Positions 43,935-64,000 of a stretch of 64,000 bases of DNA are shown in pieces; position 1 is the first letter of the stretch; each line of letters begins with the position of its first letter. A model generated the notes under the pieces. It was not told the DNA's origin. It did no database searches and saw only the letters and a list, made by a program, of their open reading frames with translations. The position numbers and the translations under genes were made by a program. The DNA is taken from sequence record OP292654.1. One strand, given 5' to 3'.

Positions 43935-44016
43935 TTGAAAATTGAATAAAAAAGGGTTGACGAGAGTCAGCCCTTTTTGTTATACTTTTCGTACTGAAAT
44001 TTAAGAGAGAAATGAA

Positions 44017-44556
44017 ATGACCCGTATTAATCTGATACCTGTTACTGAACTTGCTGACCAACATCTTATGGCTGAATATCGTGAATTACCACGTGTGTTC
44101 GGTGCTGTACGTAAACACGTACAAGAAGGTAAACGTAAAAGTTCTTTCAAGATCAATAGCACTTATATTTTAGGTACTGGTCATGTTACATTCTTCTATG
44201 ATAAGCTTCTATTCCTTAAACAACGGCACGAAGATTTAGTTACTGAATGTTTACGCCGTGGTATCAAAATTACCAATACTGCTATTAACAGTATTAGTGA
44301 TTTGCCAGCAGAATTCTGTAATGATTATAATCCTACAGAATCCGAGATTAAGTTGTCTCGTGATCGTATTATTGAAAAACTCTTACTGAAACCAACTTGG
44401 TATAAGTATACTGATGTTGAGTTTCCTCAGTACTATATTGATATTTTGAAATCATATATCAGTACTGACAATGAATCGACTGGACAATCAATTAATATTG
44501 ACGATGAATATGAAGATGTTGAACGTCAAATTAAAGAAGAAATGAATAATTATTGA
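44017..44556 (+). CDS. denV: pyrimidine-dimer DNA glycosylase / endonuclease V
   Basis: [25 protein letters not shown]...[13 protein letters not shown], the T4 DenV signature. Confidence 0.95.
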
Positions 44557-44616
44557 TTGACAGCCCCTGAGCTATCGTGTAAGATAGCTCTATCTTAACT
44601 GAGAGGATAAAGCATC

Positions 44617-45003
44617 ATGACCGACGAAGAAATTCGTGCCAAAATCGCTGCCATTACAATTGACCTGAACAAAGCGTTCCTTCAAATTGTTGAAAAACAT
44701 GGTTTGGATAAGATGGAACGCGGTCGCTGTACTTTCACCGATGATGGTTTTCAAATGAAAATCTCAGGCGTATTCAGTGGTGGTGATAGTTCTGAAATGG
44801 CTAAACTCCGTGCTAATACGGTTGTGCTCGGTCTTAAAGATTCAGCGGTAGGTGCGGTAATCAACTTCGGTGGTGAACACTACGAACTGATCGGAATGAA
44901 GCAGAAGAACCTTGTTCTTCGTAAAGGTGAAAAGAACTACATAGCATCCATCGACAATGTGGTTGCTGCGATTAAACGAAATCATCCAGACCTGGTTCTG
45001 TAA
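44617..45003 (+). CDS. hypothetical protein
   Basis: GAGG RBS; promoter TTGACA-N17-TAAGAT at 44557. Confidence 0.7.
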   Translation: MTDEEIRAKIAAITIDLNKAFLQIVEKHGLDKMERGRCTFTDDGFQMKISGVFSGGDSSEMAKLRANTVVLGLKDSAVGAVINFGGEHYELIGMKQKNLVLRKGEKNYIASIDNVVAAIKRNHPDLVL

Positions 45004-47592: not shown

Positions 47593-48188
47593 AAATAAAC
47601 AATTTAGATGAATCAGTTACCTACCGTGACGAACACGGTAGGAAACATAATTTTGATTGGTATAATTCATGGAATGCTATGCATTCTAGAACTGAAGAAG
47701 TGTATCAATCAAAGTTTCCAACATACATTGGTTGTACTGTTTGTGAAGAATGGAACTTACTTTCTAATTATAAAAAGTTCTATGAAGATAATTATAGTAC
47801 TGGATATGTTTTAGATAAAGATTTATTAGTATTTGGTAATAAAGTATATTCACCTGATACCTGTGTATTTGTTCCTGAATATGTTAATGCGGTAATTAGT
47901 TTAAAACACAATAATACATTAATGAAAGGTGTTTATTTTGTATCTAATAAAAATATATATCATTCACGTGGGTATTTAAATGGTAAACGCATAAGCTTAG
48001 GTTATTACAAAACTGAATTAGAAGCACATCAAGCATGGCAGAAACACAAAATTATGTCAATCCATAATGTAATTGAAAAATATAAGTGCGAAGAAAAACC
48101 CTTAGAATCAGTTATAACCGCTTTACAATTGCGTATCAATATGATACAGTCCAATCTTGACAATAATACATCAACTGATAGGATTTGA
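47589..48188 (+). CDS. HNH-type homing endonuclease
   Basis: W..MHSR...YIGCTVCEEW...LDKDLLVFGNKVYSPDTCVFVP. Confidence 0.8.
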   Translation: MKINNLDESVTYRDEHGRKHNFDWYNSWNAMHSRTEEVYQSKFPTYIGCTVCEEWNLLSNYKKFYEDNYSTGYVLDKDLLVFGNKVYSPDTCVFVPEYVNAVISLKHNNTLMKGVYFVSNKNIYHSRGYLNGKRISLGYYKTELEAHQAWQKHKIMSIHNVIEKYKCEEKPLESVITALQLRINMIQSNLDNNTSTDRI

Positions 48189-48523
48189 TTATGGAAATCT
48201 ATGGTTTAATTGTGACACATTTGTGGTTGGTATCGTTGGTAGTACTGTACATTGGTTACTTGACCTATGCAGATTATTATGATAAGTTCTCAGATGAATT
48301 CATGATGGATTACAAAATTCTTTCATTAGTAACAACTGTAATATCCTTTGTGATATTCGCTGCTGCTTTACCAGATGCTGCTAAAAAAGTAAGTCCCTGG
48401 GAAATGTACGTTGGCATTAGTTGCCTATGTTCATGGATACTATCAATCGGCACTGTAGTACTGTTCGTTCGTCATTCTGGTGGCATTCGTCAGTACTTCG
48501 GACGTAAACGCAATAAGGTGTAA
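48185..48523 (+). CDS. membrane protein, ADYY..KRG paralog array #1
   Basis: YLTYADYYDKF; three TM helices; YFGRKR. Confidence 0.7.
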   Translation: MIMEIYGLIVTHLWLVSLVVLYIGYLTYADYYDKFSDEFMMDYKILSLVTTVISFVIFAAALPDAAKKVSPWEMYVGISCLCSWILSIGTVVLFVRHSGGIRQYFGRKRNKV

Positions 48524-48525
48524 CT

Positions 48526-48864
48526 ATGTATGATCTGTTAGCTCCACTCAATTTCATTTTGTGGATTGGAATCACCATAATTTATTTTGTCGGGAACTTG
48601 ACATACGCCGACTATTATACTAAACTGTCTGCCGATACACGTCAAGTGTTCAACATGATAATTGGTATTCAAGCTGGATGCTTTCTGGCTAACTTTACGT
48701 TAGTTGCCTTAGTCGAACAAAGCATTTACAAAGGCTTTCGTTATGGCTTAGGATGGTGTACTGGTTTATCCTTATTCATATACGCAATAGGTATTGGATT
48801 CGGTTTATATTATGGTTTTAAAGAACTGAAACAGTACTTTGGTAAAAAGCGGGGTAAACTATAA
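48526..48864 (+). CDS. membrane protein, paralog array #2
   Basis: NLTYADYYTKL; YFGKKRGKL. Confidence 0.7.
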   Translation: MYDLLAPLNFILWIGITIIYFVGNLTYADYYTKLSADTRQVFNMIIGIQAGCFLANFTLVALVEQSIYKGFRYGLGWCTGLSLFIYAIGIGFGLYYGFKELKQYFGKKRGKL

Positions 48865-49202
48865 TGTTTATTGAAATCTGTGTCGCTTTATCTTATTCAG
48901 TACTAGCATTCTTGATGGTAGTCTTTATTGGTTACTGGACAGGAGCTAACTACTTCTTTAAGCTGAATAAAGATTTCATACAATTTCTTTCAGCTTTTAA
49001 TGCTGTAGCTTGGTTTTTCTTTTTATTTGTTCGTGGTCTAGCTGCGATTGCACAAACACGGTCAGAAGAGTTTACATATAACCTTTCATATGGTATTGTA
49101 GGTGTTGTAAACATGGTATTGATTGGATTGTTCATAGCTGCTAATCTGTTTGAATGGTTCGAAATCTCACGTAAGTACTTCTGGTCTAAACGTGGTCGTT
49201 AA
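48864..49202 (+). CDS. membrane protein, paralog array #3
   Basis: YWTGANYFFKL; YFWSKRGR. Confidence 0.7.
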   Translation: MFIEICVALSYSVLAFLMVVFIGYWTGANYFFKLNKDFIQFLSAFNAVAWFFFLFVRGLAAIAQTRSEEFTYNLSYGIVGVVNMVLIGLFIAANLFEWFEISRKYFWSKRGR

Positions 49203-49222
49203 ACTTTAACTTCGTAAGGGTA

Positions 49223-50011
49223 GTGAAAATGATTAAACTTCAAATTGAAGACGCAACACTCGTAACTCTGGATAAAGCATTACTGCCACACGTACAATGG
49301 AAATCCATTCGTATCTGTGATCTGGAAGGTGTAGACACTGAAGTACTGAACACGTATCTGTTCAAAATGTCTAAGCCGATCATCAAATCACTGATCAAAA
49401 ACAATCGTGTGAATCCAACCAACCTCAGTGCTGAACAGTGGGTTGAGATCCTGGAAGTCGCATACTATCAGGATGGCTGGGATGTACTGGCAAACGTACA
49501 AATGCCGTACAGCGTTATTCGTGAAATCCTGGATAACAACCGTTTGGCTCGTCGTTTTGGATCACAAATCGCCCGTTCACAAGATGCGATTCCAGTTGCT
49601 GAAGCACTGAAACTTCTGGAATGGCGTGAATTCAACGATATTCTGATCAGTTCTCGCAATCCGGCGATCCGCCACTTCATGTTTACTGATGAAGGGTTAG
49701 CGATCCTGAAGTCACGCAGCGATAACATTATTCGCAATCTGCGTTACCTGACTACCGAAGAATTTGCTAAGGTAGGTCGCCAGTTCAGGAACCGTAGTAT
49801 CAGCGTTCGTGCGTTGAACCGTGCTGGTGCGTGTGATGCTGGTCAGCGTTACTGTCGCGATGTGCTGACTGAATTGAACCGCACTTCCATTACCTGGAAC
49901 GAAGCAGTTCATGAAATCCGCACGAATCCGGCTCTGCGTAAACGTACCCATCTGCTCCACTACATGGACTGGATCTACGAACGCAGCGAATACCTGGAAG
50001 AAGCAAAATAA
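49223..50011 (+). CDS. helical-repeat protein, CxxG paralog family
   Basis: LNRAGACDAGQRY...ITWNEAV. Confidence 0.75.
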   Translation: MKMIKLQIEDATLVTLDKALLPHVQWKSIRICDLEGVDTEVLNTYLFKMSKPIIKSLIKNNRVNPTNLSAEQWVEILEVAYYQDGWDVLANVQMPYSVIREILDNNRLARRFGSQIARSQDAIPVAEALKLLEWREFNDILISSRNPAIRHFMFTDEGLAILKSRSDNIIRNLRYLTTEEFAKVGRQFRNRSISVRALNRAGACDAGQRYCRDVLTELNRTSITWNEAVHEIRTNPALRKRTHLLHYMDWIYERSEYLEEAK

Positions 50012-50059
50012 AATCTAATGAACTCCCTTCGGGGAGTTCTTTATTAACTGGACTTAAAC

Positions 50060-50398
50060 ATGACAAACATATTTGAAGTACTAGAACTAATTTGTTTATT
50101 CCTGAACATCGCATCACTTGTAGTACTTGGTATTGGTTGGTTAACATGTGCTGACTATTACTTTAAAGTGGTAGATATTAATGATGGACTACCAGCATTC
50201 ATGCATGTGTTGTTTGGTGTTTCGTTAAGTTTCGCCACAATAGTAGTTGGTTCGTCATTCAATGGGATTGGTAAAGCTCCATACGTAAATCTCGGATACT
50301 TTTGTATTTGGATATTAATCGGAGTATCAATATTCGGTTATGATAAAATATCCAATCTCCGTAAGTACTTCGCAACTAAACGAGGTCGTCGCATATGA
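50060..50398 (+). CDS. membrane protein, paralog array #4
   Basis: WLTCADYYFKV; YFATKRGRR. Confidence 0.7.
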   Translation: MTNIFEVLELICLFLNIASLVVLGIGWLTCADYYFKVVDINDGLPAFMHVLFGVSLSFATIVVGSSFNGIGKAPYVNLGYFCIWILIGVSIFGYDKISNLRKYFATKRGRRI

Positions 50399-50739
50399 TC
50401 AGTAATATCTGGTTATTCGTAGAACCATACATCTATGTTCCTTCAGCCATCTATGTAGTACTGACACTGTTAGTATACATGATGTGGCTTTTCGGTACTG
50501 ACTGGTATGATCGTTTCAAAAAGTTATGGTGGAACTCACTTGACTTTATGAAAGTGTACTTCTGGTGGGCATTAGTAGTCAATGCCATTGGATTTATCTT
50601 CACTGAACATGTCATCTATGGTTGGGCAGCCTTTAACTTCTGGTGTTCACTTGTACTGATACTATATGGTATTCGGTTAGTTCATCACCTTCTACATTCA
50701 TTCAACGCCTGGTGCTTAGTAAAGCGGGGTAAACTATAA
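50395..50739 (+). CDS. membrane protein, paralog array #5
   Basis: WLFGTDWYDRF; WCLVKRGKL. Confidence 0.7.
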   Translation: MISNIWLFVEPYIYVPSAIYVVLTLLVYMMWLFGTDWYDRFKKLWWNSLDFMKVYFWWALVVNAIGFIFTEHVIYGWAAFNFWCSLVLILYGIRLVHHLLHSFNAWCLVKRGKL

Positions 50740-51089
50740 TGTATAATTTCTTTCTGACATATGGGGCAGTGCCATCATATATCATCATGGGTATGGCAGT
50801 AATAGTATTAGTACTGTGGACTCTAGGAACTGATCTCTATGACTTCTTAGAAGAAACATTTTTCGATACAGATGATGCTGTCGGTACTTGTATTCTTCAT
50901 GTAGTACTGTCAGTTATTTTCACTATACCATTTGTTTTATGGGGTGCTGAAGCTCCACCAGTTGCGTTCTTCTATGCTATCTGGACAGGTTGGCTATGTT
51001 TAGTAGTACTGGTAGTCAGTGTAATAATCTTTCTTTCTATCCTTTCCTGTATTCGGGATTGGTGCTTATCTAAACGAGGTAAAAAGTAA
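50739..51089 (+). CDS. membrane protein, paralog array #6
   Basis: WTLGTDLYDFL; WCLSKRGKK. Confidence 0.7.
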   Translation: MYNFFLTYGAVPSYIIMGMAVIVLVLWTLGTDLYDFLEETFFDTDDAVGTCILHVVLSVIFTIPFVLWGAEAPPVAFFYAIWTGWLCLVVLVVSVIIFLSILSCIRDWCLSKRGKK

Positions 51090-51487
51090 TGTTCAATCCT
51101 ATTCTTGAAAACATCGCCAGTGTATATCAGTGGTTCTGGATTGGTGTATTTGTTTTGTTCGTTGTTGATTGGTCATTCGGGTTTGATAAAGTCAGTGACG
51201 CAATGAATAAACTTTTTGATTTCTATGGTCGTTATGTACCAATTGAATCATCTGGTCCATTGGTATTACTAACTGTAGTTGGTTGCTTCTGTAAATTAAT
51301 GACTATTCCATTCGATCCCGTATTCTTTGGCCTAATGGCTAATCTATTCGGTATTCTGGTTATCGCATTCATCGTGTTTATGTCAGTATTCGCAGTACTG
51401 TATAAGGGGCTAACTACCCTGCGTAAGACTAGCATAGCACGGCGGGAAGAAAAAGCCCGTAAAAAGTCCTTGACGGACTCCGAGTGA
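51089..51487 (+). CDS. membrane protein, paralog array #7 (divergent)
   Basis: WSFGFD; three TM helices; basic C-terminus. Confidence 0.65.
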   Translation: MFNPILENIASVYQWFWIGVFVLFVVDWSFGFDKVSDAMNKLFDFYGRYVPIESSGPLVLLTVVGCFCKLMTIPFDPVFFGLMANLFGILVIAFIVFMSVFAVLYKGLTTLRKTSIARREEKARKKSLTDSE

Positions 51488-52071: not shown

Positions 52072-52737
52072 ATGAAACGTACTAAAGTAATGAACTATGA
52101 TCGTTTTCGCAAAGTACGCACCTTCTGGAAATATAGTGCTATCTTCCTTGCGGTAGGTGGTTCTATGTTTATTGCTGGATGCGACGATTCAGAAAACGTG
52201 TCTGTGTACAAAACAATCCAGGACTGCGAAAGTTCTGCCGCAAACCAGGCAGCTAAAGATCGCTGTGCTCTGGATTACCAAAACGCATTAGCACAAAACG
52301 CAAAAGTCGCACCTAAGTATTCTTCGCAGAAAGATTGTGAAGATGAATTCGGTATAGGACAATGTAACGTACAGCAAAGTACTGCTAATAATGTCAGTAC
52401 TTCTAATGGTTCCCATAGTTCCTTTATGTGGTTCCCGTTAATGTCCGGTTATAGTTCTTCACATGCGAACTATCCGAGTCAACCACTGTACAGTTCACGG
52501 AGCTATAACTCTCCGATGTATGGTAAGTTCGTAGATAGTAAAGGTACTTCATTCGGTTCCTTTACTTCTAAAGGTACTGCTAGTGTTCCTAAAAGTTCAC
52601 TCGCACCTAAAGCAGCAACTACTACCACAACAACACGTGGTGGATTTGGTGGCACTGTAAGTAAAATGAGTTCATCATCGCATAGCTCAAGTTCTTTCAG
52701 TTCTCATTCTTCTGGTTCACGTAGCTTTGGTGGATAA
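52072..52737 (+). CDS. ygiB: YgiB/DUF1190-family lipoprotein
   Basis: MKRTK...AGC lipobox, VSVY...DC...APKY.S..DC..EFG.GQC, FMWFPLMSGY, APK.ATTTTTTRGGFG, SRSFGG resemble E. coli YgiB. Confidence 0.88.
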   Translation: MKRTKVMNYDRFRKVRTFWKYSAIFLAVGGSMFIAGCDDSENVSVYKTIQDCESSAANQAAKDRCALDYQNALAQNAKVAPKYSSQKDCEDEFGIGQCNVQQSTANNVSTSNGSHSSFMWFPLMSGYSSSHANYPSQPLYSSRSYNSPMYGKFVDSKGTSFGSFTSKGTASVPKSSLAPKAATTTTTTRGGFGGTVSKMSSSSHSSSSFSSHSSGSRSFGG

Positions 52738-53255: not shown

Positions 53256-53285
53256 AAAAAAAACCCGCCTTGAGCGGGTTTTTTT
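53256..53285. terminator. bidirectional terminator
   Basis: A-tract-CCCGC-CTTGA-GCGGG-T-tract between convergent operons. Confidence 0.9.
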
Positions 53286-53292: not shown

Positions 53293-54438
53293 TTATTCCG
53301 GTAATGATAGTGGAACAAAAGTTGTTTGTGTTGTCGTATAATCTGGAAAATAGTTACTATTACCAGATACATACATAGTCCTTCCATCATTCTTTAATAT
53401 GAATGAACAATAACCAGTAATTTCAAGTGATTCGATTTCCGATACCTGAATACCTGAAGGTAATGTCATTTTAGTATATGAACCTACATTACTTGTACTA
53501 CCAATAGATAACTGACCAGAATCATTTCTACCAGTAACATAAATTCCAGTTCCAGTTCTGAACCATGTATTCCATGCTTTAGTACTATTAATTGTAGTAT
53601 CTGTAATAGCACTTGGTAGACCATTGTTTAATGATGTATAAGCATTGACAACAGCACTTGTGCTTGTAGTATGCCCATTACCAATAGCACCATAAGCATC
53701 GTCACCAGTACTGAATACAGAACCACTCGATGAAACATATGATGATGTATACCTACCTGTAAAAATAGTATTCGGCACTATACCAGAACTAATCCACGAT
53801 GTACTGGCTGGGTTTGAGCCATATCCTATTTGACCATATTGGTTCCATCCTGCTCTATATAATATTCCAGTACTTAGATCTATAGCAAGGGAAAATACAA
53901 TACCTAAGCAAAAATCTTTTGTGTTAGTTCTGGAAACAATAAAAGATGATTGACTAACAGTGCTACCAGTACCAATGTTCCCTTGACTGTTATAACCCAT
54001 TTGATATAATGTGTTATTAGTACAAAGAACTCCAATAGCAGTACCAGCGATTTGAATCTTTTTAATGGTAAGACTGTTATTAGCAAAGTAATTCATTGCT
54101 GTTAAATTTGTCCAGGTATTAACATATACTGGATCAGAATCAGTTGTTCCTGATAGTCTTTGGTTCCCTGCATATTGCCATGTTCCAGAATTTAATTTAA
54201 CTAAACAACATTCTGAACCAGCATAAAAATCAGCAACATTAGTATTACATAGTTGCCATGTTTTGTATACCGCATTAACTGTGCCTACACCAAATTGTTT
54301 ATATGTATTATGACCAATGGCATATAAATTTCCTGAAGCGAATAAGACAAATAATGATTCAGTGGTTGCTTGTATCTTCACTATAGATCTAGGAAGAATT
54401 GTATTTCCATATTGTACTAATTGTGGAAATGGTAACAT
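53293..54438 (-). CDS. MLPFP-array protein, RCC1/BLIP-II-like beta-propeller
   Basis: repeated Y..G.N..GQ.G motifs. Confidence 0.75.
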   Translation of the reverse strand: MLPFPQLVQYGNTILPRSIVKIQATTESLFVLFASGNLYAIGHNTYKQFGVGTVNAVYKTWQLCNTNVADFYAGSECCLVKLNSGTWQYAGNQRLSGTTDSDPVYVNTWTNLTAMNYFANNSLTIKKIQIAGTAIGVLCTNNTLYQMGYNSQGNIGTGSTVSQSSFIVSRTNTKDFCLGIVFSLAIDLSTGILYRAGWNQYGQIGYGSNPASTSWISSGIVPNTIFTGRYTSSYVSSSGSVFSTGDDAYGAIGNGHTTSTSAVVNAYTSLNNGLPSAITDTTINSTKAWNTWFRTGTGIYVTGRNDSGQLSIGSTSNVGSYTKMTLPSGIQVSEIESLEITGYCSFILKNDGRTMYVSGNSNYFPDYTTTQTTFVPLSLPE

Positions 54439-54447
54439 TTTATCTCC

Positions 54448-55074
54448 TTATGATGACATTGTTATGTTGAAGCTATCTATAATACCATTAAAAGGATAAG
54501 CATTATCAGTACTGTCACCTACAGTAAATGGATTTGATTGATTCATAAAACCTAATGTCATAGTTAATGTACCAATCAATACTCCATCAACTTCACATGT
54601 CAAATTAGTACCTAATCGCTGTAATTTAATGTGATGCCATGTGTTAGGTGAAATAGTTGCTTGATTTGTGAAATGAAAACGTTGAACTGAACCAGTGGTA
54701 CTAAATCCATCCAAAGCGACTACAGAGTTATCCTGGAATGTATTATTGATAACCATCCACCATGAACCTGTACCATTATTTTGAAGATTACCACATAAAA
54801 TACGTGTACCAGTACTGCTTAACTTAATGTAAGTCTCTATAATAAAATTAGTACTATTACCAATTTGCCATATAGATGGAATACCGCTTGAGCCAACTTG
54901 TATTTTTGCTGAGGTTGGTTTAAATTGAATGGCATTATATGATTCAGTGTAAAAATCTGTTGGAGTTTTATTAATATTTGATTCAATTAATGTTCCACCA
55001 GTTTTTAATAGTGTAATAATAGTATTTTCTGACGGAACTATTGTTGTTTTAGATATAATCGGAAAAGGTAACAT
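54448..55074 (-). CDS. MLPFP-array protein, LamG/concanavalin-like
   Basis: NTWHHIKLQR...FNGIIDSFNI. Confidence 0.75.
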   Translation of the reverse strand: MLPFPIISKTTIVPSENTIITLLKTGGTLIESNINKTPTDFYTESYNAIQFKPTSAKIQVGSSGIPSIWQIGNSTNFIIETYIKLSSTGTRILCGNLQNNGTGSWWMVINNTFQDNSVVALDGFSTTGSVQRFHFTNQATISPNTWHHIKLQRLGTNLTCEVDGVLIGTLTMTLGFMNQSNPFTVGDSTDNAYPFNGIIDSFNITMSS

Positions 55075-55083
55075 ATTAAATCC

Positions 55084-55713
55084 TTAAAAATCTATTATTA
55101 TTCTAGCAAGATAGCAAACACTTGAACCAACAGTAATTGAGGTTTGATTTGATATATTAGCTGTATTTGCTATTTGTGTGTTTGTGTATGAAGTACTAGT
55201 ACCAAGTGAAAAAGTTTGCTGAACATCATTGAGATAGATTTTTTCTACACCACTCTTTCTTTCTATTTTTATTTTAATCACTTTCTGATAATCAGATGGT
55301 CTAGTGTATGGTATACTATGAACTGAATTACCACTAGAATAACCAAAAAAACCAGCTAATCGCCATGCATAGCCAGCATCACTGTACTGAAATCCAGTTA
55401 ATGTACCTGATCCTAATGCCCCAAAAGATGCGATAGAACCATACCCACTATTCACATTAGAAGCACAATAATATGTAGCTTCAATGATACAATCAGAACT
55501 ACCAATATTAAATGATGTTGTCAGTGTACCTGCTGAAGCACCACGAGTATAGCCATATGTGTTAGTTGGAACTGCTGGAATCGTACCAAATGAACCTCCT
55601 GTCCATGTGGCATTTATTGAACCATTTGATGTGTTAGCATTAAAATCATAATCTATTTTGTATCTAGGAATAACAATATTCCCATATTGACTTATACGAG
55701 GAAATGGTAACAT
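55084..55713 (-). CDS. MLPFP-array protein, concanavalin-like beta-sandwich
   Basis: ERKSG.EKIYLN; paralog of 59268. Confidence 0.7.
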   Translation of the reverse strand: MLPFPRISQYGNIVIPRYKIDYDFNANTSNGSINATWTGGSFGTIPAVPTNTYGYTRGASAGTLTTSFNIGSSDCIIEATYYCASNVNSGYGSIASFGALGSGTLTGFQYSDAGYAWRLAGFFGYSSGNSVHSIPYTRPSDYQKVIKIKIERKSGVEKIYLNDVQQTFSLGTSTSYTNTQIANTANISNQTSITVGSSVCYLARIIIDF

Positions 55714-55722
55714 GTTTTCTCC

Positions 55723-56484
55723 TTAGTTTCCATTATAGATAGTACTGGTATCAAAGTTGGAAGTCCATACTGCTTTCTTGCGTATTCTGAATCTTTCTAT
55801 ACATGATACATGAGCATTACCATTGACGAATTGATAACCATATATACCAGTTTGTAATGATACAGGATTTATAATAGTATATGTGAAAGTTTGTTTCAAT
55901 ACTCCATTTATAAAGAACCTAAAGGTTCCTGAACCATTGTAAACCAAAGCTATATGATGCCATGTCGTGCTAATAACTTCATCATTACGTGATGTTGCTG
56001 TTCTTGGTGGAGTAGTATTATTATTCCATAAACTTAAGTACAGTGACCTATCTGAATCTTGTTGAACTAATAAACGTTGAGTATAGTTAGTGCCTTGAAT
56101 TATATTAGCATTAACAAATAGATAACTCATATTAGCATAAAAGTTATTAGTGATTACTGTATCAAGTCTATGCCAATAATCCACTGTCCATGCTCCAACC
56201 CATGTTGATGATGGTATTGATGATGTATATGTAGCACCACGGAAATTCATTTTAATACCTTTCCCATATTGAAATGTATTATCGTTGTATATTGCTGGAT
56301 AAGCCCCTATAGTACCTAGAACATTATTAATTACTGTTTGTGATGCACCCGCATAATCAGTGAATCCTGATTGACTGAAGTTTTTACTATCATAAGCTGA
56401 TAACAGAGAACCATCAGTTTCATCGTACCAATGTGTCGTTGGTGCGATATTCCCATATTGTACTAATTGTGGAAATGGTAACAT
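55723..56484 (-). CDS. MLPFP-array protein, LamG-like
   Basis: WTVDYW...TTWHHIALVYNG..RFFING..IERFRI. Confidence 0.75.
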   Translation of the reverse strand: MLPFPQLVQYGNIAPTTHWYDETDGSLLSAYDSKNFSQSGFTDYAGASQTVINNVLGTIGAYPAIYNDNTFQYGKGIKMNFRGATYTSSIPSSTWVGAWTVDYWHRLDTVITNNFYANMSYLFVNANIIQGTNYTQRLLVQQDSDRSLYLSLWNNNTTPPRTATSRNDEVISTTWHHIALVYNGSGTFRFFINGVLKQTFTYTIINPVSLQTGIYGYQFVNGNAHVSCIERFRIRKKAVWTSNFDTSTIYNGN

Positions 56485-56493
56485 TTTGTCTCC

Positions 56494-57342
56494 TTATGCT
56501 ACTACTGCTATAGTATTGTTTGTAAACATGGCATATAATTTATTATTATAAAAATTCATACCAACACAAACTCTTGTATCTGAAGTTAGCGATGTTACTA
56601 ATGAACCTTCACCAGTATCAGCATTATATTTGTACAATCCATTAGCATTGCTCCACAAATAAATCCATTTGTTATACCCACAAAAAATTGGATTCGCAGT
56701 AGTATTATTCATTGTGTAAGCTGTGCTCCATGTATTAGTACTTACTGTGTATTTCATTAATCGACGTGGACTATTATTATTAATATAAACAGCACCATTG
56801 TAGTAATATCCATTTGATGTACCACCAAATCCAGGTGCTGTTAAATTTGTCCAGGATGAACCATTCCAGTAACTAAAAACTGTACCAGTACCGTTACCAC
56901 TAGGAGCATGAACCAAATAAAAAGTACTATCAGTAACTGATATTAATGTCACATTCCATGTGGAAGATGGAATAGTACCTATTTGTGTCCATGTTGTACT
57001 TGCTGGTGAATAAGAATCAAATCTGTTGCTTCCAACTCCACCACTATTATTATAACCTCCAGCCAGTACAAAATTGCCACTTGGTGTAGTAGCTATACCA
57101 GAGTTTCGTAATGTACTTACTGGTCTAGTTGTTATTTGTGACCATGTGTTAGCATCAGCATTATATCTGTACTGTGAACCAACTTGGTTAGTCATATACA
57201 TGTACTGACCGTTCCCGCAAAAACGGTTCTCAGCAGCAGCAGCACCAGGAGCCGTAGTTCCCGATGTTATTGTGCCAACAATTCCAGGATCAGGATACGC
57301 AATAGTATTCCCGTACTGGACTAATTGTGGAAAAGGTAACAT
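56494..57342 (-). CDS. MLPFP-array protein, Kelch beta-propeller
   Basis: VLAGG..FDSYSPASTTWT; KYTVSTNTWS; start corrected to the MLPFP ATG at 57342. Confidence 0.75.
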   Translation of the reverse strand: MLPFPQLVQYGNTIAYPDPGIVGTITSGTTAPGAAAAENRFCGNGQYMYMTNQVGSQYRYNADANTWSQITTRPVSTLRNSGIATTPSGNFVLAGGYNNSGGVGSNRFDSYSPASTTWTQIGTIPSSTWNVTLISVTDSTFYLVHAPSGNGTGTVFSYWNGSSWTNLTAPGFGGTSNGYYYNGAVYINNNSPRRLMKYTVSTNTWSTAYTMNNTTANPIFCGYNKWIYLWSNANGLYKYNADTGEGSLVTSLTSDTRVCVGMNFYNNKLYAMFTNNTIAVVA

Positions 57343-57353
57343 TATTATTCTCC

Positions 57354-58520
57354 TTAAGTGTATTTCGCTGGTAAAACTACTTCTTGAAATGTTGTATTTG
57401 AACCAGTACCGCCAAATGCTGTACCAATTATCCAAAGTTTTCTTGTTCCAGCACCAGTATCATATAACGCATACATTGATCTAGATGAAGCTTCACAGAA
57501 TTTTAATGAATCTATATTAACAACATCAGGCACATTTCTCAATAAATGTGGAGACTGATTTCCTGTATTACTAGTATCCAATGGCATCATATTATTTGCT
57601 GACCATCCATACATAGCCCCACTTCTTCTTATGTGCATAGCTATTGATGTTCCGGCTAGTATATAAAGTAAATTGTTAGATGAACTTCCTGAACCATTAA
57701 ACACTGCATAAGCATTTATTGTGTTATTAATGTTAGCAGTATTAACAACTCCACTAATACCACTATAATACATAATATTATCAGTACTTTTGAATATACA
57801 AAAGTTTGACCCGAATTGAATATCCGTAAATGTTTTACTTGATATTGTTGGAGTCCATGTAGTATATGTTCCAGAACCAGTATTTGATATTTGTTTCCAT
57901 CCATCATAACCAATACCAAAAGCATGTCCGGTACTATCTAAACCCATCCAAACATCATTATATCCAGTAGATAAAGGATATGAAAAAATCTTTACCAATG
58001 GAGTACTAGGAGTATTAATTCTCCAACCAGTATATCCAGTACTTGTTATTGTTGTTCCAGTCATTATACTCGATGGAACAGTAGTATAGATATTGCCATC
58101 TGAACATAAAAATGCTACATAATTATATGAGAATTTAACATCAATTACAATATTACCAGATACAGGTATCCTATCACTTATATTAGTGTAAGTACTTATT
58201 GGTGATGTTCCTAGTGATGGTGAACCCAAAGTAGCAGATCTTAATACGCCACAAAACCAAATAGTACCATCATTCTTTATAGCTATACTACTATCTGAAC
58301 CATTCATGAATACATCACGAACATCAGTTAATGTAGAATCATACCATCCTAATGATGTACTTGTACTTCCTGTTCCTAAATTTCCAGACGGATTTGTGCC
58401 ATAACCAGTCAATGTTCCATCTGAACCCAATATTGTTAAATTACTACCACCAATAACCATTTTCTTTATTGAAGCAACTGGAACAATATTCGTATTACTT
58501 ATAATCGGAAAAGGTAACAT
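57354..58520 (-). CDS. MLPFP-array protein, RCC1-like beta-propeller
   Basis: DGTLTGYGTNPSGNLG; DGTIWFCG. Confidence 0.75.
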   Translation of the reverse strand: MLPFPIISNTNIVPVASIKKMVIGGSNLTILGSDGTLTGYGTNPSGNLGTGSTSTSLGWYDSTLTDVRDVFMNGSDSSIAIKNDGTIWFCGVLRSATLGSPSLGTSPISTYTNISDRIPVSGNIVIDVKFSYNYVAFLCSDGNIYTTVPSSIMTGTTITSTGYTGWRINTPSTPLVKIFSYPLSTGYNDVWMGLDSTGHAFGIGYDGWKQISNTGSGTYTTWTPTISSKTFTDIQFGSNFCIFKSTDNIMYYSGISGVVNTANINNTINAYAVFNGSGSSSNNLLYILAGTSIAMHIRRSGAMYGWSANNMMPLDTSNTGNQSPHLLRNVPDVVNIDSLKFCEASSRSMYALYDTGAGTRKLWIIGTAFGGTGSNTTFQEVVLPAKYT

Positions 58521-58603
58521 TTATCCCCCTTTTAATTCTTATTACTGTATTTACCTATATAAACAAGAAAAGCCCGACCTAAATCGAGCCTTTATTGAGT
58601 ATA

Positions 58604-59257
58604 TCATAGTACTGCGTCTATTCTTATTCTTTGTATTTGACCCTGGAAATTAGCATTACCAGCACCACGTACATAACTAGCACCGATGGCAAATTGTGTA
58701 CCATTGCCAAATCCTGCCGGTACTGTACCACTGAATACATTTGTATTACTATCGTTATCGTGGATAATCATTGTCTTGGTAGTCGGAATCCATTCGATAG
58801 TTAAATCTCTCCAAGTACTAACTGTGTAAGAGAATTGACACCTGGTAAAAGTACCAGCACTGTCAGTACAGAATAATTGAGTACCAGTAGCATTGAACAA
58901 CGTTAGTAATATACCACCAACAATTGAACCACTAGAATAAAAATCACCAGTACTGAATACCATGTTTTCAGATGATACAGTACTCTTGAATACTATTCGC
59001 ATCTTAAAATGTAAATTACTTAATGATATGTTGCTTACCATTGGTGTAGTAAAATATGATGAACCACTGAATTGCATAACATTACCTTTAGTGGCATCAT
59101 TAACTACTGATGCTGCTCCCGTTCCTACCTTCGTAAAAACATGTCCAGCAGCATCAGTAACTGTAGTACTTCCAACAGAACTATTATTAAAATTAATATC
59201 CATTAATGCTGTCTGAACAACATTTCCGTACTGTACTAATTGTGGAAATGGTAACAT
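58604..59257 (-). CDS. MLPFP-array protein, LamG-like
   Basis: GNVMQFSG...TWRDLTIEW...NFQGQIQRIRI. Confidence 0.75.
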   Translation of the reverse strand: MLPFPQLVQYGNVVQTALMDINFNNSSVGSTTVTDAAGHVFTKVGTGAASVVNDATKGNVMQFSGSSYFTTPMVSNISLSNLHFKMRIVFKSTVSSENMVFSTGDFYSSGSIVGGILLTLFNATGTQLFCTDSAGTFTRCQFSYTVSTWRDLTIEWIPTTKTMIIHDNDSNTNVFSGTVPAGFGNGTQFAIGASYVRGAGNANFQGQIQRIRIDAVL

Positions 59258-59267
59258 TTACTTCTCC

Positions 59268-59876
59268 TTAAAAGTTTAATTTAACATTTATTAATGCCAT
59301 ACCAGTACTACCTAAATTTAATGAAGTTAATGTAGTATAGTTGATAGTATCAACAATCTGTGTATTACTATATGAAGTGCTTGTTCCAACAGCAAAGTTA
59401 GTCTGTACACCATTAACATAAAACTTAGATATTCCAGACTTTCTCTCCCATCTCAATTTAAATACCTGCTGGTAAGTACTGAAACGAGTATCTGGAATCG
59501 CGTACTGTAATGTCTGATTACCAGCATCAGCAGCGTACTGTATGCGGTTCCCATAACCACTATCACCATATCTTAAACCAGTGTTCTGATTAAATGTAGC
59601 AATAATGCTGTACCCAACTGTATTGTTATTATTGTAATACTCAGCCTCTAAGTAATAATCTCCAGTACTAATAGGTAAAGCACTTGGAAAGGTTAATGTA
59701 GCACCACCAATCCCTGTACTATATCCACTTACAGGTACTGAAATATAGGAACCACCACTTACAGTTCCAGATAACAATCCAGAACTAACCGTTGTATTGT
59801 TCGAAAATGTATACTCATATTTCGGGATATTCAGTACTGTATTGCCGTACTGTAGCATTCTTGGAAATGGTAACAT
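59268..59876 (-). CDS. MLPFP-array protein, concanavalin-like beta-sandwich
   Basis: WERKSGISKFYVNG; shares GTSTSY.NTQI with 55084. Confidence 0.7.
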   Translation of the reverse strand: MLPFPRMLQYGNTVLNIPKYEYTFSNNTTVSSGLLSGTVSGGSYISVPVSGYSTGIGGATLTFPSALPISTGDYYLEAEYYNNNNTVGYSIIATFNQNTGLRYGDSGYGNRIQYAADAGNQTLQYAIPDTRFSTYQQVFKLRWERKSGISKFYVNGVQTNFAVGTSTSYSNTQIVDTINYTTLTSLNLGSTGMALINVKLNF

Positions 59877-59885
59877 ATATACCCC

Positions 59886-60626
59886 TTAAATATTTTTAAC
59901 AAATATAGGCCACCAAAAATTGATAGCTTGAGTCCATAATGGTGCTATACTCGTAGTACAGATTTGTGAGAATTCATAATCCCCACCAGAACTTGCTGTA
60001 TCAAATCTACCGCGACCTAATGAACGTGGAGAAGTTCTTGAACCATCTGAACCCTGACATAAAGCCCAACGCCTAGTACTAGAACTATAGGTGAATCGAG
60101 GAACTTTATCTGAAGTCTGAACCGTATATCCAGAAGTAAATGAAGATGGTGTATTACTCCAAATACTATAAAAGAATCTCTCCCAATCAGTCATTGGATT
60201 ATAGTACTGTGGATCATTACTCAAAAAATTAGATACAGTACTTGTTGGTGCTCCAGTAGGTAACATGATTTTATATACTGAACCTTCTATAGTAATAGTT
60301 TGACTCTGTATTGTCAATGCTATACCACTAGAACTGTCAAATATATCTGGCCCATTATCATTTGAACCATATACCATACCTTTTTCATATACTTCCTTAT
60401 ATGAAGCAATAGCAAAAGGTTGACTTGGTATAATATAGTACTTACTGTTATAAACAAATTTAAAACATCTAAATGAACCCTGCTGTGAAACCCTAGTACC
60501 ACTAGGATTTAATGTATCCATTATGGTACTATATAAATTAGTACTGACTAATCCCACATATTGATCTGTCAGTACAGGAGGAACTACAACGTTCCCATAT
60601 TCTATTAATTGCGGAAATGGTAACAT
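59886..60626 (-). CDS. MLPFP-array protein, unknown domain (putative virion protein)
   Basis: FKFVYNSKYYIIP...WERFFY; shared N-terminal peptide. Confidence 0.65.
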   Translation of the reverse strand: MLPFPQLIEYGNVVVPPVLTDQYVGLVSTNLYSTIMDTLNPSGTRVSQQGSFRCFKFVYNSKYYIIPSQPFAIASYKEVYEKGMVYGSNDNGPDIFDSSSGIALTIQSQTITIEGSVYKIMLPTGAPTSTVSNFLSNDPQYYNPMTDWERFFYSIWSNTPSSFTSGYTVQTSDKVPRFTYSSSTRRWALCQGSDGSRTSPRSLGRGRFDTASSGGDYEFSQICTTSIAPLWTQAINFWWPIFVKNI

Positions 60627-60638
60627 ATTTTTTATCCT

Positions 60639-61565
60639 TTATGTCAATTTAAATGCTTGTGAAGTAACAGGTGATTTTCCACCTAATGTCAATATGAAGT
60701 TATCCTGTACTGAAGCAAATATATTCGCGTCAATAGCATAACCTGGTATAGTACTCAAAAATATTAAATTACTTAAATCAGATTTGTATAATGAACCAGT
60801 ATCAAATCCCATTAACGCAACCGTACCTTTAAAATATTCAATACGCCCTATCTGTGTTGAAGTACTGAACATTATATTCCAAACATTACTATCAGTACTG
60901 TACCTCATTAAATGATATGTACCTCCTGAACCTGGTGTTCCTGAACCACCCTGTACACCCATACTGTAAAAGTCTGAACCAATCATAAACGATGAACTCG
61001 CATAGGACATTGGATAAGGCGATGTAGCTAATGTACTCCAAGTATTAGAAGCAATATCATATGAATGCATTGTATTCGCAGATGCCTGTGTATAGTAATC
61101 ACCGAACAAATATAACTTCCCATTGTAGTACTGCATTGTACTATGTACCCTAGCCGCCGGTAAAGTTCCTGAACCTACTATAGCTGAACTCCAAGTTCCT
61201 GTATCAATACTATATCTGTACATGTCATTACGCTTCGTACTCAATGACGGAGTTCCAGTACTTCCACCAAAAACATATATCATGTTATTAACAGAATCAT
61301 GTGCCATTGCTGACCCACCACGAACACCCTGTGGATGCTGTAATAAAGAACTCCACGTATCAGTACTAGCTGTGTACTTCCAAAAGTCTCTGTAGTATGT
61401 AGTACTGTTAACTCCACCTAAAGCATATATGTCTCCTGATGGAGTCCTACAATATCCCATCTCAGCACGTACCGACATTGCCGAATAAGTATTTGCTTCA
61501 TAATTACCTAAGAATGTTGGTACTACAACGTTCCCGTACTCTACTAATTGTGGAAATGGTAACAT
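60639..61565 (-). CDS. MLPFP-array protein, Kelch beta-propeller
   Basis: IYALGG..YTASTDTWS; IYVFGG..YSIDTGTWS; LYLFG..YDIASNTWS. Confidence 0.8.
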   Translation of the reverse strand: MLPFPQLVEYGNVVVPTFLGNYEANTYSAMSVRAEMGYCRTPSGDIYALGGVNSTTYYRDFWKYTASTDTWSSLLQHPQGVRGGSAMAHDSVNNMIYVFGGSTGTPSLSTKRNDMYRYSIDTGTWSSAIVGSGTLPAARVHSTMQYYNGKLYLFGDYYTQASANTMHSYDIASNTWSTLATSPYPMSYASSSFMIGSDFYSMGVQGGSGTPGSGGTYHLMRYSTDSNVWNIMFSTSTQIGRIEYFKGTVALMGFDTGSLYKSDLSNLIFLSTIPGYAIDANIFASVQDNFILTLGGKSPVTSQAFKLT

Positions 61566-61575
61566 CTATTTCTCC

Positions 61576-63642
61576 TTATTGTACCTTCCATGTGTTTGTA
61601 CTCGCAGAAGAAGAACTTCCACCAATCCAGTATACCTTACCTTGATTAGTACTAGCTCCTAATACAAATCTGTCACCCATCGTAGTTCCTGAACCTACTA
61701 CACTCCATAAGTTAGAAGCTAATCTGTACGCACGTAATTGAGCACCACTCGTACTTAACTGATAGATAAATCCATTACAATATACCATCCTCGCAGTTCC
61801 TGAACCCTTAGCTGATAATAATACCCACATACTCTTACTAACTATGTATTTGTAAAACGTTGAGTTCGTTGTACAAATGTATAAATCAGTACCGTCAGTA
61901 ACCATATCTGTATTAACATCCTGTGTGCCTATATCACTAGGTACTGTAGATATTAATGTGAATGTATTCGTACCAGGATCAAATCTGTAAAAGTTATTCG
62001 AAGTACTAAATCCTGTACCACCAAATATATAGATGGACGCACCAATAGCACACATCTTAGCAAAATCCCTCGCCCCTGGCGTTCCCGTAGTACTCAATAA
62101 CGTAAACACTCCAGTACTCAAATCTACACTATGCATCGTGTTTGTAGTACTTCCACCTGTACTCGTGATTCGTCCACCAAATATGTATAACTTATCATTG
62201 TATACCGTTATACATGCCCCGTACTTCGCAATAGCACTTGCATCCATAGGAACCTGTGTCCAAGCATCTGTCGGAACATCATATATCCATATGTCACTCT
62301 GCATCGTGTTACCACTAACTAAAGCACCACCATAGACTATAAACTTGTCAGTACCATATGGACATACAGCATGACCATATCTAGCCATGTTCGGTACTGT
62401 AGTACTTATATTACTGTACGCACCACTTATAGGTGCTTCACTTGTCCATAATACCGATTGCGGTGTACTCATTAATGTCCATGTCGTCGCATTCGCCGAT
62501 AACAATGAATTAGCAGTACTACCAGTTACATAGACTTCATCCTTCACTACAGCATAAGCATTAGATGGATTGTTACATAAGTATCTAATATCCGCTGTGT
62601 CTAATCTGCTCATTGCTCCAGTACTAGCATTGATTAATGTAGTAGTAGGATTCGTCGCAATACCTGTTCCTAACAAATAACTGTTGTTCAATCCTACTGC
62701 CTTTAATCCTGAACTCGTTCCTATAAAAGTACTGTAATAATACCCACTAGATGAAATGATATTATTCGCTCCAGATGTAACAGGTATGTATGGACTCGAT
62801 ACATATGTACTAGGTGATGTTGTTCCATTACCTGCTTGATATTGCCCATTATTACCATATATACGAACACCACCATCAGTTCCCAATATCCATAAATTAT
62901 AATCATTTACAGATAACTTCTGTATTCCTACAGTACCATTGATAGTGTACTGCTGAAATGTCGTTCTTACACTGCTCGTAGTACTGTCAGCTAAGGTTCC
63001 ATATGTATTTGTACCACATCTCCAATATGTCCCGTCCAACTTCTTTATCCATGTAACGTTCTGACCAAAATAAACCTCAGAAACATTATCACCATTAGGA
63101 ATCTGTACTAACGTATAAATCGAAGCAGTACTAGTAGCATTACCTAACGCATTGTATTGATTACTTCCTATACCCCATAAATGATTGTTAACATCAATTA
63201 CATAAAAACGAGAAGGACTGTTCTCATACAAATATATCGCCTTAATTGTAGATATATCAAATGTACTAAACACTGAAGTCATATCAGTCCATGTACTTGT
63301 GTTAACTAAACCATATCCCTGACCCGCCGAGTTCGCAAAAGCATTCGTTATATTACCTGAATACCAAGCAGTATTATCCTTCTTTATAATAACAGTACTA
63401 ACATTCGAACTAGCACATAAACGTACATTAGTATTAACTCTACTCCAAGCACCACTAATAGCTGTAGTATTCCCCGTTCCAAATAAACTGTTACTTGAAC
63501 CATTAAACCCTAAAGCATACAAATCACCATTGTCATATAGGATAGTTTGGGCTGAATTGTACGTAACATTAAATTGCTTTATAAGCTTTATCTCAGGAAT
63601 AATGTTGTTCCCGTAATAAACTAATTGTGGAAAAGGTAACAT
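61576..63642 (-). CDS. MLPFP-array protein, RCC1-like + Kelch double propeller
   Basis: N-half LWGIGSNQY/YGNNGQYQAG repeats; C-half IVYGG/LYIFGG Kelch repeats; start corrected to 63642. Confidence 0.8.
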   Translation of the reverse strand: MLPFPQLVYYGNNIIPEIKLIKQFNVTYNSAQTILYDNGDLYALGFNGSSNSLFGTGNTTAISGAWSRVNTNVRLCASSNVSTVIIKKDNTAWYSGNITNAFANSAGQGYGLVNTSTWTDMTSVFSTFDISTIKAIYLYENSPSRFYVIDVNNHLWGIGSNQYNALGNATSTASIYTLVQIPNGDNVSEVYFGQNVTWIKKLDGTYWRCGTNTYGTLADSTTSSVRTTFQQYTINGTVGIQKLSVNDYNLWILGTDGGVRIYGNNGQYQAGNGTTSPSTYVSSPYIPVTSGANNIISSSGYYYSTFIGTSSGLKAVGLNNSYLLGTGIATNPTTTLINASTGAMSRLDTADIRYLCNNPSNAYAVVKDEVYVTGSTANSLLSANATTWTLMSTPQSVLWTSEAPISGAYSNISTTVPNMARYGHAVCPYGTDKFIVYGGALVSGNTMQSDIWIYDVPTDAWTQVPMDASAIAKYGACITVYNDKLYIFGGRITSTGGSTTNTMHSVDLSTGVFTLLSTTGTPGARDFAKMCAIGASIYIFGGTGFSTSNNFYRFDPGTNTFTLISTVPSDIGTQDVNTDMVTDGTDLYICTTNSTFYKYIVSKSMWVLLSAKGSGTARMVYCNGFIYQLSTSGAQLRAYRLASNLWSVVGSGTTMGDRFVLGASTNQGKVYWIGGSSSSASTNTWKVQ

Positions 63643-64000
63643 CTTTATCTCCTTATAAAAATTCTTACATGTACTATCATGCACTGATAGTACGTAGTAT
63701 ACGTATTTACCTGCATAGACAGTACTAGACACCTCTTAGAACATCATCTATAATACCCCTATAACCTCCTAGAACGCTCTGTAACGCATCGGTTTGATTC
63801 CTGTAGTATCGCTATTGCGATATCGAAAGGATTCAAACTAGCTAAAATAGCGTTCGCGATATTCTATGTATTAATATACAGTACTGTAAAAATACACAAT
63901 ATGTATAAGCTAACAGTACTATTGAATACTTTAACAGGCACGAGATACTAATGTCAATCCCTTGTATAGTACTGTACCAGTACTGAACCCCCTTCCACTA

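Follow-up and report, generated by a model that had tools for sequence, protein, structure and literature searches.

Why should eleven adjacent genes of a giant bacteriophage, whose products have several unrelated folds, all encode the same few residues at their start? The question is raised by Xanthomonas phage XbC2 (OP292654.1; 367,901 bp), a RaK2/GAP32-like giant myovirus of the genus Mimasvirus. The window analysed here is the terminal 64,000 nucleotides of this record (it begins at record base 303,902 and runs to the last base of the record). Towards its end, the annotated genes XbC2_581–591 form an array of 11 consecutive minus-strand open reading frames (ORFs), every one of which starts with MLPFP. 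A first-pass annotation of the window had pointed out this array, and the ORFs that it relied on match XbC2_581–591.

The array genes are labelled in the record as 'DNA condensation', 'LamG domain protein', 'regulator of chromosome condensation', 'structural protein', 'kelch-like protein' or 'hypothetical'. The studies of the giant phages CBB and phAPEC6 left open which genes make or decorate the hairs on the tail and capsid of these particles, and also why there should be a dozen 'chromosome-condensation-like' genes. We report that the common start is a short peptide tag, conserved as a peptide and separable from the heads that follow it, and we examine what it may be for.

A peptide shared by otherwise unrelated proteins

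When the 64-kb window is translated in all six frames, the motif LPFP is found 11 times, each time at the start of an array gene; the expectation from composition over these frames is 0.74 occurrences for LPFP and 0.015 for MLPFP. A piecewise scan of the whole 368-kb XbC2 record found no full tag outside the array. The two subtypes noticed at first pass were both confirmed, MLPFP being followed by (Q/R)xxxYGN in nine of the eleven proteins and by IIS in the other two. The codons of the tag vary synonymously (CCA/CCT/CCG, CAA/CAG, TAT/TAC, GGA/GGG/GGC, AAT/AAC), and where two codons stand for one and the same residue of the tag, they differ in 34% of pairs; selection therefore acts on the tag as a peptide.

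Tagged ORFs were also found in other phages. The set collected here numbers 71 ORFs, including XbC2's own 11 and the single tagged protein of phAPEC8, and spans at least 10 BLAST head clusters and at least five phage lineages. The carriers are Mimasvirus (CBB, GAP32), Eneladusvirus (BF), Asteriusvirus (phAPEC6), XaC1 and four metagenomic contigs. There are nine tagged genes in CBB, nine in Serratia phage BF (mostly of the IIS subtype), at least 11 in phAPEC6, two in the record end of GAP32, which was the part examined, and four to nine in each of the metagenomic contigs, one array of which holds an orthologue of XbC2_582 with the matching tag subtype. XaC1 has three tagged genes with an MFPIP start, and joins the …IIS to the …YGN form. 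Degenerate back-translated tag DNA matched IMG/VR only once, with no corresponding ORF, and this match was treated as chance.

Over the 71 ORFs, the tag columns are conserved as follows: M1 100%, L2 79%, P3 100%, F4 85%, P5 58%, R6 52% or I6 34%, Y10 70%, G11 65%, N12 58% and I/V13 53%, with Pro at position 15 in 34% and at position 16 in 23%. The tag may thus be described as a peptide of about 12–16 residues in which Met, a hydrophobic residue and Pro are followed by another hydrophobic residue and then by Pro or a small residue; after these come a short hydrophobic run, a polar turn (…YGN or …S/N-x-T) and a second short hydrophobic run that often closes in Pro.

It should be noted that four full-length tagged ORFs at the start of the phAPEC6 record are unannotated, and that the annotated start of phAPEC6 gp002 lies upstream of an internal tag and was probably placed too early.

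The heads behind the tag

Past residue 16, similarity between the XbC2 array proteins is found only within one fold class. The array is made up of five propeller genes, three verified LamG-like genes, the pair XbC2_583/588, and XbC2_589. The proteins are 200–690 residues long, and their heads are near-neutral and rich in Ser, Thr, Asn and Gly.

RCC1-like propellers make up the heads of XbC2_581 and XbC2_586 and the N-terminal half of XbC2_591, while Kelch propellers form the heads of XbC2_585 and XbC2_590 and the C-terminal half of XbC2_591. XbC2_581 matched Pfam RCC1 with 47.4 bits (cut-off 21.7) as well as RCC1_2 and WD40_RLD, and its sequence matches in the PDB are the RCC1-like domains of HERC2, UVR8 and RPGR. 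XbC2_586 matched RCC1_2 with 24.3 bits (cut-off 22) and WD40_RLD; both proteins matched phrog_4219. Kelch_4, Kelch_6, Kelch_3 and Kelch_1 were each above cut-off in XbC2_585, and XbC2_590 scored 86 bits against Kelch_KLHDC2_KLHL20_DRC7 (cut-off 50) and 69.6 bits against Kelch_1; phrog_12615 aligns from residue 1 in both. XbC2_591 matched WD40_RLD at residues 30–276 and Kelch families at residues 365–649, with several Kelch models above cut-off.

Laminin_G_3 (cut-off 27.6) was matched by XbC2_582 with 45.8 bits and by XbC2_584 with 42.5 bits, and XbC2_584 also matched phrog_3545. Pfam gathering thresholds were not reached by XbC2_583, 587, 588 or 589. For XbC2_587, AlphaFold2 predicted an all-beta sandwich from a 63-sequence alignment (predicted local distance difference test, pLDDT, 94.1; predicted template modelling score, pTM, 0.88). 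The best Foldseek match of this model in the PDB was 5hon_A (E 2e-9, template modelling score 0.68), from carbohydrate-binding domain 4 of AbnA, an arabinanase. The other matches, with 12–18% identity, were to the generic lectin-like jelly-roll, a sub-domain present in many proteins and also in the receptor-binding halves of clostridial neurotoxins; the likeness amounts to a shared fold and nothing beyond. In BFVD, the model matched structural proteins of CBB as well as LamG-like domains from proteins of the tail fibre, tail, minor tail and baseplate wedge. XbC2_587, which aligns over its full length with phrog_6011 ('virion structural protein'), is the array member most common among the relatives.

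XbC2_583 and XbC2_588 are paralogues with 39% identity. XbC2_583 had no match in Pfam or PHROG; XbC2_588 weakly matched phrog_3545 and aligned with the XbC2_587 family in hhalign (E 1.5e-7) over residues 1–84 only, tag included. Their fold is left unassigned because the significance of the LamG-family profile match is confined to a stretch that includes the tag. XbC2_589 had no match in Pfam and no sequence match in the PDB, and all the Foldseek matches of its medium-confidence AlphaFold2 model (pTM 0.70) in the PDB had E > 1; its 13 orthologues all carry the tag. The folds assigned at first pass were thus borne out for the RCC1-like and Kelch propellers, for the fusion of the two in XbC2_591, for LamG in XbC2_582 and XbC2_584 (by Pfam) and XbC2_587 (by AlphaFold2 and Foldseek), and for XbC2_589 as an unknown domain, while the LamG assignment of XbC2_583 and XbC2_588 could not be verified.

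The tag as a module separate from the head

In both AlphaFold2 models the tag is predicted to be a flexible extension outside the fold of the head. Residues 1–10 of XbC2_587 have a mean pLDDT of 54, the remainder being at 90 or above, and the first strand begins at residue 15; in XbC2_589, residues 1–16 have pLDDT below 50. Because the heads have unrelated folds, the tag must have been joined to them by recombination and not have persisted through divergence.

The separation is also visible within a single head family. Depending on the protein, orthologues of the XbC2_587 head begin with a tag of the YGN subtype, with one of the IIS/IIN subtype, or with an N-terminus unrelated to either. A profile search for this family among 1.84 billion representative proteins returned 74, nearly all of them stand-alone proteins of 210–230 residues. 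With earlier matches included, there were 76 stand-alone proteins of about 215 residues, of which 26 have an MLPF-type tag and 43 an unrelated 'M-x-E-x-L-L' start. The latter defines a second tag class (Met, variable, Glu, variable, Leu/Met, Leu/Met). In the rV5-like phage GAP31 it is found on the neighbouring genes GAP31_108 (7953–8603 of the stretch examined) and GAP31_106 (9159–9770), one of which is annotated as a virion structural protein, and this class may serve a different lineage of phages as an address system parallel to the first.

Moreover, the variants of the tag follow the genome and not the head family. Over tag positions 2–12, unrelated heads of one genome have an identity of 0.70, as against 0.43 for homologous heads of different genomes, and the observed value was not attained in any of 2000 label permutations. 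This is the pattern expected from co-evolution with one partner per genome. The first-pass annotation had taken the tag to be a separable docking module. Its separability is supported by at least 10 head families, by the unstructured tag of the models, by the differing subtypes, or unrelated tag, of orthologous heads and by the tracking of the genome; docking, and the partner that it calls for, stay at the level of proposals.

Tagged proteins in the virions of relatives

Homologues of the array proteins are present in virions. Electrospray ionization tandem mass spectrometry of CBB particles, as published, detected CBB_536, 537, 548, 549, 551, 552 and 553. By coordinates, these are seven of the nine tagged genes of CBB, and they include CBB_549 and CBB_553, the orthologues of XbC2_587. 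Eight array proteins, annotated as 'DNA condensation protein' or hypothetical, were found in phAPEC6 virions with 1–5 peptides each, and gp001 of GAP32 was also positive by mass spectrometry. The first-pass prediction that the array encodes virion components therefore holds for the close relatives CBB, phAPEC6 and GAP32.

The RCC1-like ('DNA condensation') and Kelch proteins that RaK2-like phages encode in multiple copies (GAP32 gp001, 121Q_234–248, PBECO4 286–296, phAPEC6 gp001–010 and gp549–551, and CBB_550/552/554) belong to the same locus and family as XbC2_581, 586, 585 and 590, and mass spectrometry has placed such proteins in virions. Tblastn with XbC2_587 and XbC2_581 matched CBB, GAP32, BF, phAPEC6 and others, and the PHROG families are common to them from residue 1. 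That RCC1-like genes occur in multiple copies, and that some of the products are in the virion, is thus already published. The published accounts, however, treat the RCC1-like, Kelch and LamG proteins separately and speculate on DNA condensation or on an inner body, and the paralogue table of CBB contains two pairs only, 536–537 and 549–553. In the literature that we searched, no paper deals with the common N-terminal peptide, its subtypes, its genome-specific variants or the alternative tag of the XbC2_587 family, and a search for the function of phage RCC1-like proteins turned up nothing besides the CBB and phAPEC6 papers.

Hairs or fibres on the sheath have been reported for CBB, phAPEC6 and 121Q, and for phAPEC6 and 121Q also on the capsid. 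These three phages have large arrays. RaK2, which has branched depolymerase fibres and for which hairs have not been reported, lacks a converging array at the DUF1190 gene, where synteny would place it, and the 59 kb of RaK2 examined contain no tag. The correlation between array size and hairs, drawn from few phages, is suggestive. The authors of the CBB study held that proteins lacking in GAP32 should explain the tail hairs of CBB, and did not name the genes; the tagged CBB_536, 537, 551 and 552 are four of the six structural proteins that were detected by mass spectrometry in CBB and are absent from GAP32.

A possible docking peptide

We give about an even chance to the proposal that the tag is a virion-incorporation (docking) peptide, by which accessory adhesin heads are recruited to one genome-specific site, probably on the outside of the particle. 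XbC2_581–591 would then be accessory virion proteins of two modules, an address peptide and one globular ligand-binding head, and the tag would bring every head to one conserved site on the virion of each phage. That site would most likely be external, either where hair- or whisker-like fibres have their bases or tips or at one of the sheath, capsid or baseplate sites seen in relatives, and the heads, which begin a few residues after the tag, would sit directly on the socket. The particle would show a mixture of lectin-like and propeller heads in low copy number, making weak or secondary contacts with glycans or proteins of the cell surface.

Display on the outside of the virion is favoured because the tag has no conserved acidic residue that could serve as a protease site, because the proteins are large, near-neutral and of low abundance, because their verified folds are those of carbohydrate-binding and tail-associated modules, and because of a protein of phAPEC8. 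This rV5-like phage encodes, directly downstream of its tail-fibre genes (6001–8676 of the stretch examined), the 891-residue gp180, which has a tag-like MFPIPIF start, an RCC1-like region, and a C-terminal domain related to the head-spike fibre Rcc01080 of RcGTA (E 6e-14); its homologues in other phages are annotated as 'tail protein'.

Several points weigh against this interpretation. The virion data come from relatives and not from XbC2 itself, the peptide counts of the phAPEC6 array proteins are low (1–5 per protein), and mass spectrometry cannot tell the outside of a particle from its inside; the phAPEC6 authors proposed an internal, inner-body role for the RCC1-like proteins. The reports on XbC2 mention no hairs in the micrographs, and its tested host range is narrow, with three of 28 strains lysed; the modular host-range apparatus of the first-pass annotation is likewise a proposal. 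The heads are small and globular, with a very short linker, and cannot themselves form the hairs of about 119 nm seen on CBB. Uniformity of the tag within a genome could also result from gene conversion between adjacent genes. In the propeller heads, the first residues may have a structural role in propeller closure; the AlphaFold2 evidence on the tag covers XbC2_587 and XbC2_589. Finally, a docking partner was not found by Pfam searches with ten XbC2 proteins, large structural and baseplate proteins among them and including the 3339-residue XbC2_233, a search neither exhaustive nor structure-based. Nine of the ten (among them XbC2_139, 221, 231, 233, 234, 238, 306 and 307) showed no domain, and XbC2_222 matched only DUF4376.

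A docking arrangement of this general kind has been demonstrated in podophages of Klebsiella (KP32, K11, KP34), whose secondary receptor-binding protein docks by a conserved N-terminal peptide on the T4 gp10-like branching domain of the primary one (PMC13352976). In KP32 this peptide spans residues 1–29; the protein can fold without it but needs it to be incorporated into the virion (PMC13352976). The XbC2 array has in common with KP32 that a short conserved N-terminal peptide outside the fold is the only shared element, and that the heads behind it can differ. However, KP32 is a small podophage with one secondary protein, while XbC2 is a giant myovirus and its group has up to 11–13 tagged proteins per phage. 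The KP32 heads are trimeric beta-helix depolymerases, those of XbC2 are propellers and jelly-rolls, which are usually monomeric folds, and no counterpart of the gp10-like branching partner turned up in the Pfam scans of the ten XbC2 proteins. The XbC2 system resembles KP32 docking in outline and is not a member of that family, because its heads are not trimeric depolymerases and those scans gave no gp10-like partner. The branched tail spikes of CBA120 and RaK2 also use conserved N-terminal modules to mount several heads on one virion. Unlike the XbC2 tag, their modules (D1, D2, XD, anchor) are folded; each measures about 50–110 residues or more and belongs to a trimeric enzyme.

Other explanations of the tag

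The nearest alternative is provided by the T4 internal proteins IPI, IPII and IPIII and the variable internal-protein loci of T-even phages, which like the array comprise unrelated proteins that share one short N-terminal peptide, vary between phages and, as in the relatives of XbC2, are found in the virion. By published description, a capsid-targeting sequence is all that the diverse T4 proteins share, and the gene architecture is alike. The tag could accordingly be a T4-style capsid-targeting signal, with the array proteins entering the prohead core, being ejected, and binding host targets such as defence proteins. RaK2-like phages do have T4 core genes, the array proteins of relatives are in virions, phAPEC6 has an inner-body rod for which its authors put forward the RCC1-like proteins, and array content differs among relatives, as it would under an arms race. 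Nevertheless, we consider this explanation, although the main rival to docking, unlikely. In T4, the peptide takes its proteins to the prohead core and is removed by the prohead protease, and proteases of this type cleave at a motif that ends in Glu. The tag has no conserved Glu cleavage position; Glu is found at position 9 in 17% of the 71 tags and in two of the 11 of XbC2, and no other acidic residue is conserved. The T4 internal proteins are small, charged and abundant, whereas the array proteins have 200–690 residues, are near-neutral and of low abundance, and have lectin-like or propeller heads. The LamG/ConA-like folds, and the phAPEC8 protein with its place in the tail-fibre module and its adhesin-like C-terminus, suggest the outside of the particle. 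The presence of two tag subtypes in one genome also speaks against a capsid-targeting signal.

It is still less probable, in our opinion, that the tag is a handle for an assembly or quality-control factor (a chaperone, a co-chaperonin, or a Clp-type unfoldase or protease) that would govern folding, timing or turnover. The tag is exposed, N-terminal and hydrophobic, and the XbC2 annotation includes a pair of GroES-like co-chaperonins as well as ClpP-like subunits and a ClpA-like ATPase (XbC2_92, 122, 232, 264, 315), the ATPase gene sitting inside the structural gene block. The case nevertheless comes from gene annotations, no link of these genes to the array was found, and tagged proteins remain in the mature virions of relatives. 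Such a handle and a docking role would in any case be compatible with each other. The explanation to which we give the least credit is that the start has no function at the protein level and is a relic of tandem duplication, which is the published explanation of the 121Q and phAPEC6 arrays, or a DNA- or RNA-level initiation or recombination sequence. Stop codon, Shine-Dalgarno sequence and ATG are packed in one and the same tight arrangement at every gene, and up to about 26 nucleotides are identical between some genes, which could support recombination. This explanation is, however, already disfavoured. Duplication followed by divergence cannot yield a shared start on heads of unrelated folds; the conservation is at the amino-acid level, with synonymous variation, and extends across genera that use different codons; M1 and P3 are invariant in 71 of 71 ORFs; and the unrelated second tag class on the XbC2_587 head family shows that N-terminal peptides are under selection.

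Evolution of the array and possible significance

The first-pass annotation had proposed comparing array content across relatives. When this was done, position and tag were found to be kept while the heads vary between phages: BF and phAPEC6 have mostly RCC1-like heads, and one metagenomic contig has six head types. Short tagged remnants, namely an annotated 32-residue ORF in BF and an unannotated short ORF before the array in CBB, are signs of cassette decay. The variable content at a fixed position, together with the remnants in BF and CBB, fits the view, which is part of the docking proposal, that heads arise, are lost and are exchanged while the tag in front of them stays constant.

More tentatively, and with rather less confidence than we place in docking itself, it is possible that the RaK2-like giants, together with the rV5-like phages of about 150 kb that have the second tag, use a general plug-and-socket system to load heads onto hair- or whisker-like fibres covering both capsid and sheath. 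If this were true, a shifting repertoire of up to a dozen usually monomeric lectin-like and propeller heads would be mounted by a genome-tuned peptide 12–16 residues long, and virion decoration of this kind would form a class apart from the trimeric tail fibres and spikes. This would explain both what the hairs carry and the role of the 'DNA condensation' RCC1-like proteins, the two matters that the CBB and phAPEC6 papers left open. In any event, the shared tag brings together RCC1-like, Kelch, LamG-like and unknown proteins and predicts a single conserved partner, and its genome-specific variants are a co-variation signal able to point to that partner from sequence. Proteins labelled 'DNA condensation' or 'regulator of chromosome condensation' are more probably surface-binding proteins of the virion, and short N-terminal tags on exchangeable heads are found well beyond the small podophages in which they were first demonstrated.

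Layout and expression signals of the array

The genes of the array (Table 1) are separated by 9–12 nucleotides, with a single exception of 83, and none of the 11 is interrupted. A Shine-Dalgarno sequence, mostly a TAAGGAG that overlaps the stop of the preceding gene, stands 5–7 nucleotides before each ATG. The mechanically derived ORF of XbC2_585 (56494–57435, minus strand) has 31 extra codons up to a TTG at 57435, overlapping the end of XbC2_586; the ATG at 57342 is favoured because of the family-wide tag, the Shine-Dalgarno sequence and the alignment of phrog_12615 from residue 1.

Table 1. Genes of the tagged array and associated signals (positions in the 64-kb window)
Feature	Position	Strand	Description	Basis
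XbC2_581	53293..54438	-	381 aa; tag MLPFPQLVQYGN… and RCC1-like beta-propeller	Pfam, PHROG, PDB sequence matches
XbC2_582	54448..55074	-	208 aa; IIS-subtype tag MLPFPIISKTT… and LamG/ConA-like head	Pfam
XbC2_583	55084..55713	-	209 aa; tag and head without assigned fold; paralogue of XbC2_588	
XbC2_584	55723..56484	-	253 aa; tag and LamG/ConA-like head	Pfam, phrog_3545
XbC2_585	56494..57342	-	282 aa; tag and Kelch beta-propeller	Pfam, phrog_12615
XbC2_586	57354..58520	-	388 aa; IIS-subtype tag MLPFPIISNTN… and RCC1-like propeller; heads the second sub-operon	Pfam, phrog_4219
XbC2_587	58604..59257	-	217 aa; tag and LamG/ConA-like jelly-roll	AlphaFold2, Foldseek, phrog_6011
XbC2_588	59268..59876	-	202 aa; tag and head without assigned fold; paralogue of XbC2_583	
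XbC2_589	59886..60626	-	246 aa; tag and unknown-fold head	phrog_1062, phrog_3589
XbC2_590	60639..61565	-	308 aa; tag and Kelch beta-propeller	Pfam, phrog_12615
XbC2_591	61576..63642	-	688 aa; tag, RCC1-like then Kelch propeller; first gene of the array	Pfam
Promoter-like element	63703..63712	-	AGGTAAATAC, 61–70 nt upstream of XbC2_591 start	Exact copy
Promoter-like element, second copy	58547..58556	-	AGGTAAATAC, 27–36 nt upstream of XbC2_586 start	Exact copy
Terminator-like hairpin	58568..58593	-	Hairpin with T-run in the only sizeable array gap	
Bidirectional intrinsic terminator	53257..53285	both	Closes the array and the converging plus-strand genes	

The hairpin divides the array into two units, 591–587 and 586–581, and the 368-kb record has just two exact copies of the 10-mer AGGTAAATAC, one before each unit. 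The related sequence GGTAAATA is found 35–85 nucleotides before array starts or internal gaps in BF, GAP32 and three metagenomic contigs, and at about 170–220 nucleotides in CBB and XaC1. It is under-represented in XbC2, where three of its six copies lie 35–69 nucleotides upstream of minus-strand starts, those of the two array units and of the unrelated membrane-anchored pair XbC2_307/306 (record position about 227650, minus strand); because of this last copy it is not exclusive to the array. The element, in either form, has a TAAATA core in common with T4-type late promoters. The canonical T4 late-promoter core TATAAATA was absent near the array, and the canonical box precedes several XbC2 structural genes. 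On the evidence of these motifs, late expression of the array is plausible, and GGTAAATA may stand for a promoter class of its own that is akin to the T4 late box.

Neighbouring genes and other observations

The array converges on a plus-strand block of seven paralogues of about 112–132 residues (48185–51487 together with 52072–52737), which are three-helix membrane proteins sharing a basic '…KRGK/R' C-terminus; two genes for proteins of about 262 residues stand in between, and a DUF1190 lipoprotein gene comes next. Convergence of the array on the DUF1190 lipoprotein gene and the paralogues of about 112 residues is seen in the XbC2 window, CBB, BF and the metagenomic contigs. The block adjoins the tag array in all the relatives examined, and RaK2 has the block without the array.

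An initial placement of the RaK2 depolymerase fibre cluster (gp525–534) at the locus syntenic with the array proved wrong, since the cluster follows nrdD/nrdG and matches XbC2_139–141. These are three paralogues of about 900 residues, also located after nrdD/nrdG (36461–44674 of the stretch examined), and, in the place that the fibre cluster has in RaK2, are candidate long-fibre or branch proteins of XbC2; no Pfam domain was found in XbC2_139.

The G+C content of XbC2 is 33–43%, Xanthomonas, its reported host, is a G+C-rich genus, and all the close relatives of the phage infect Enterobacterales; its natural host range may be incompletely known. Many small plus-strand genes are present in the window, and 21 tRNA genes are interleaved with small ORFs within 17 kb (2885–19744, plus strand). 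Further tRNA genes are annotated upstream of the window in the XbC2 record, one of them labelled tRNA-Pyl (CTA).

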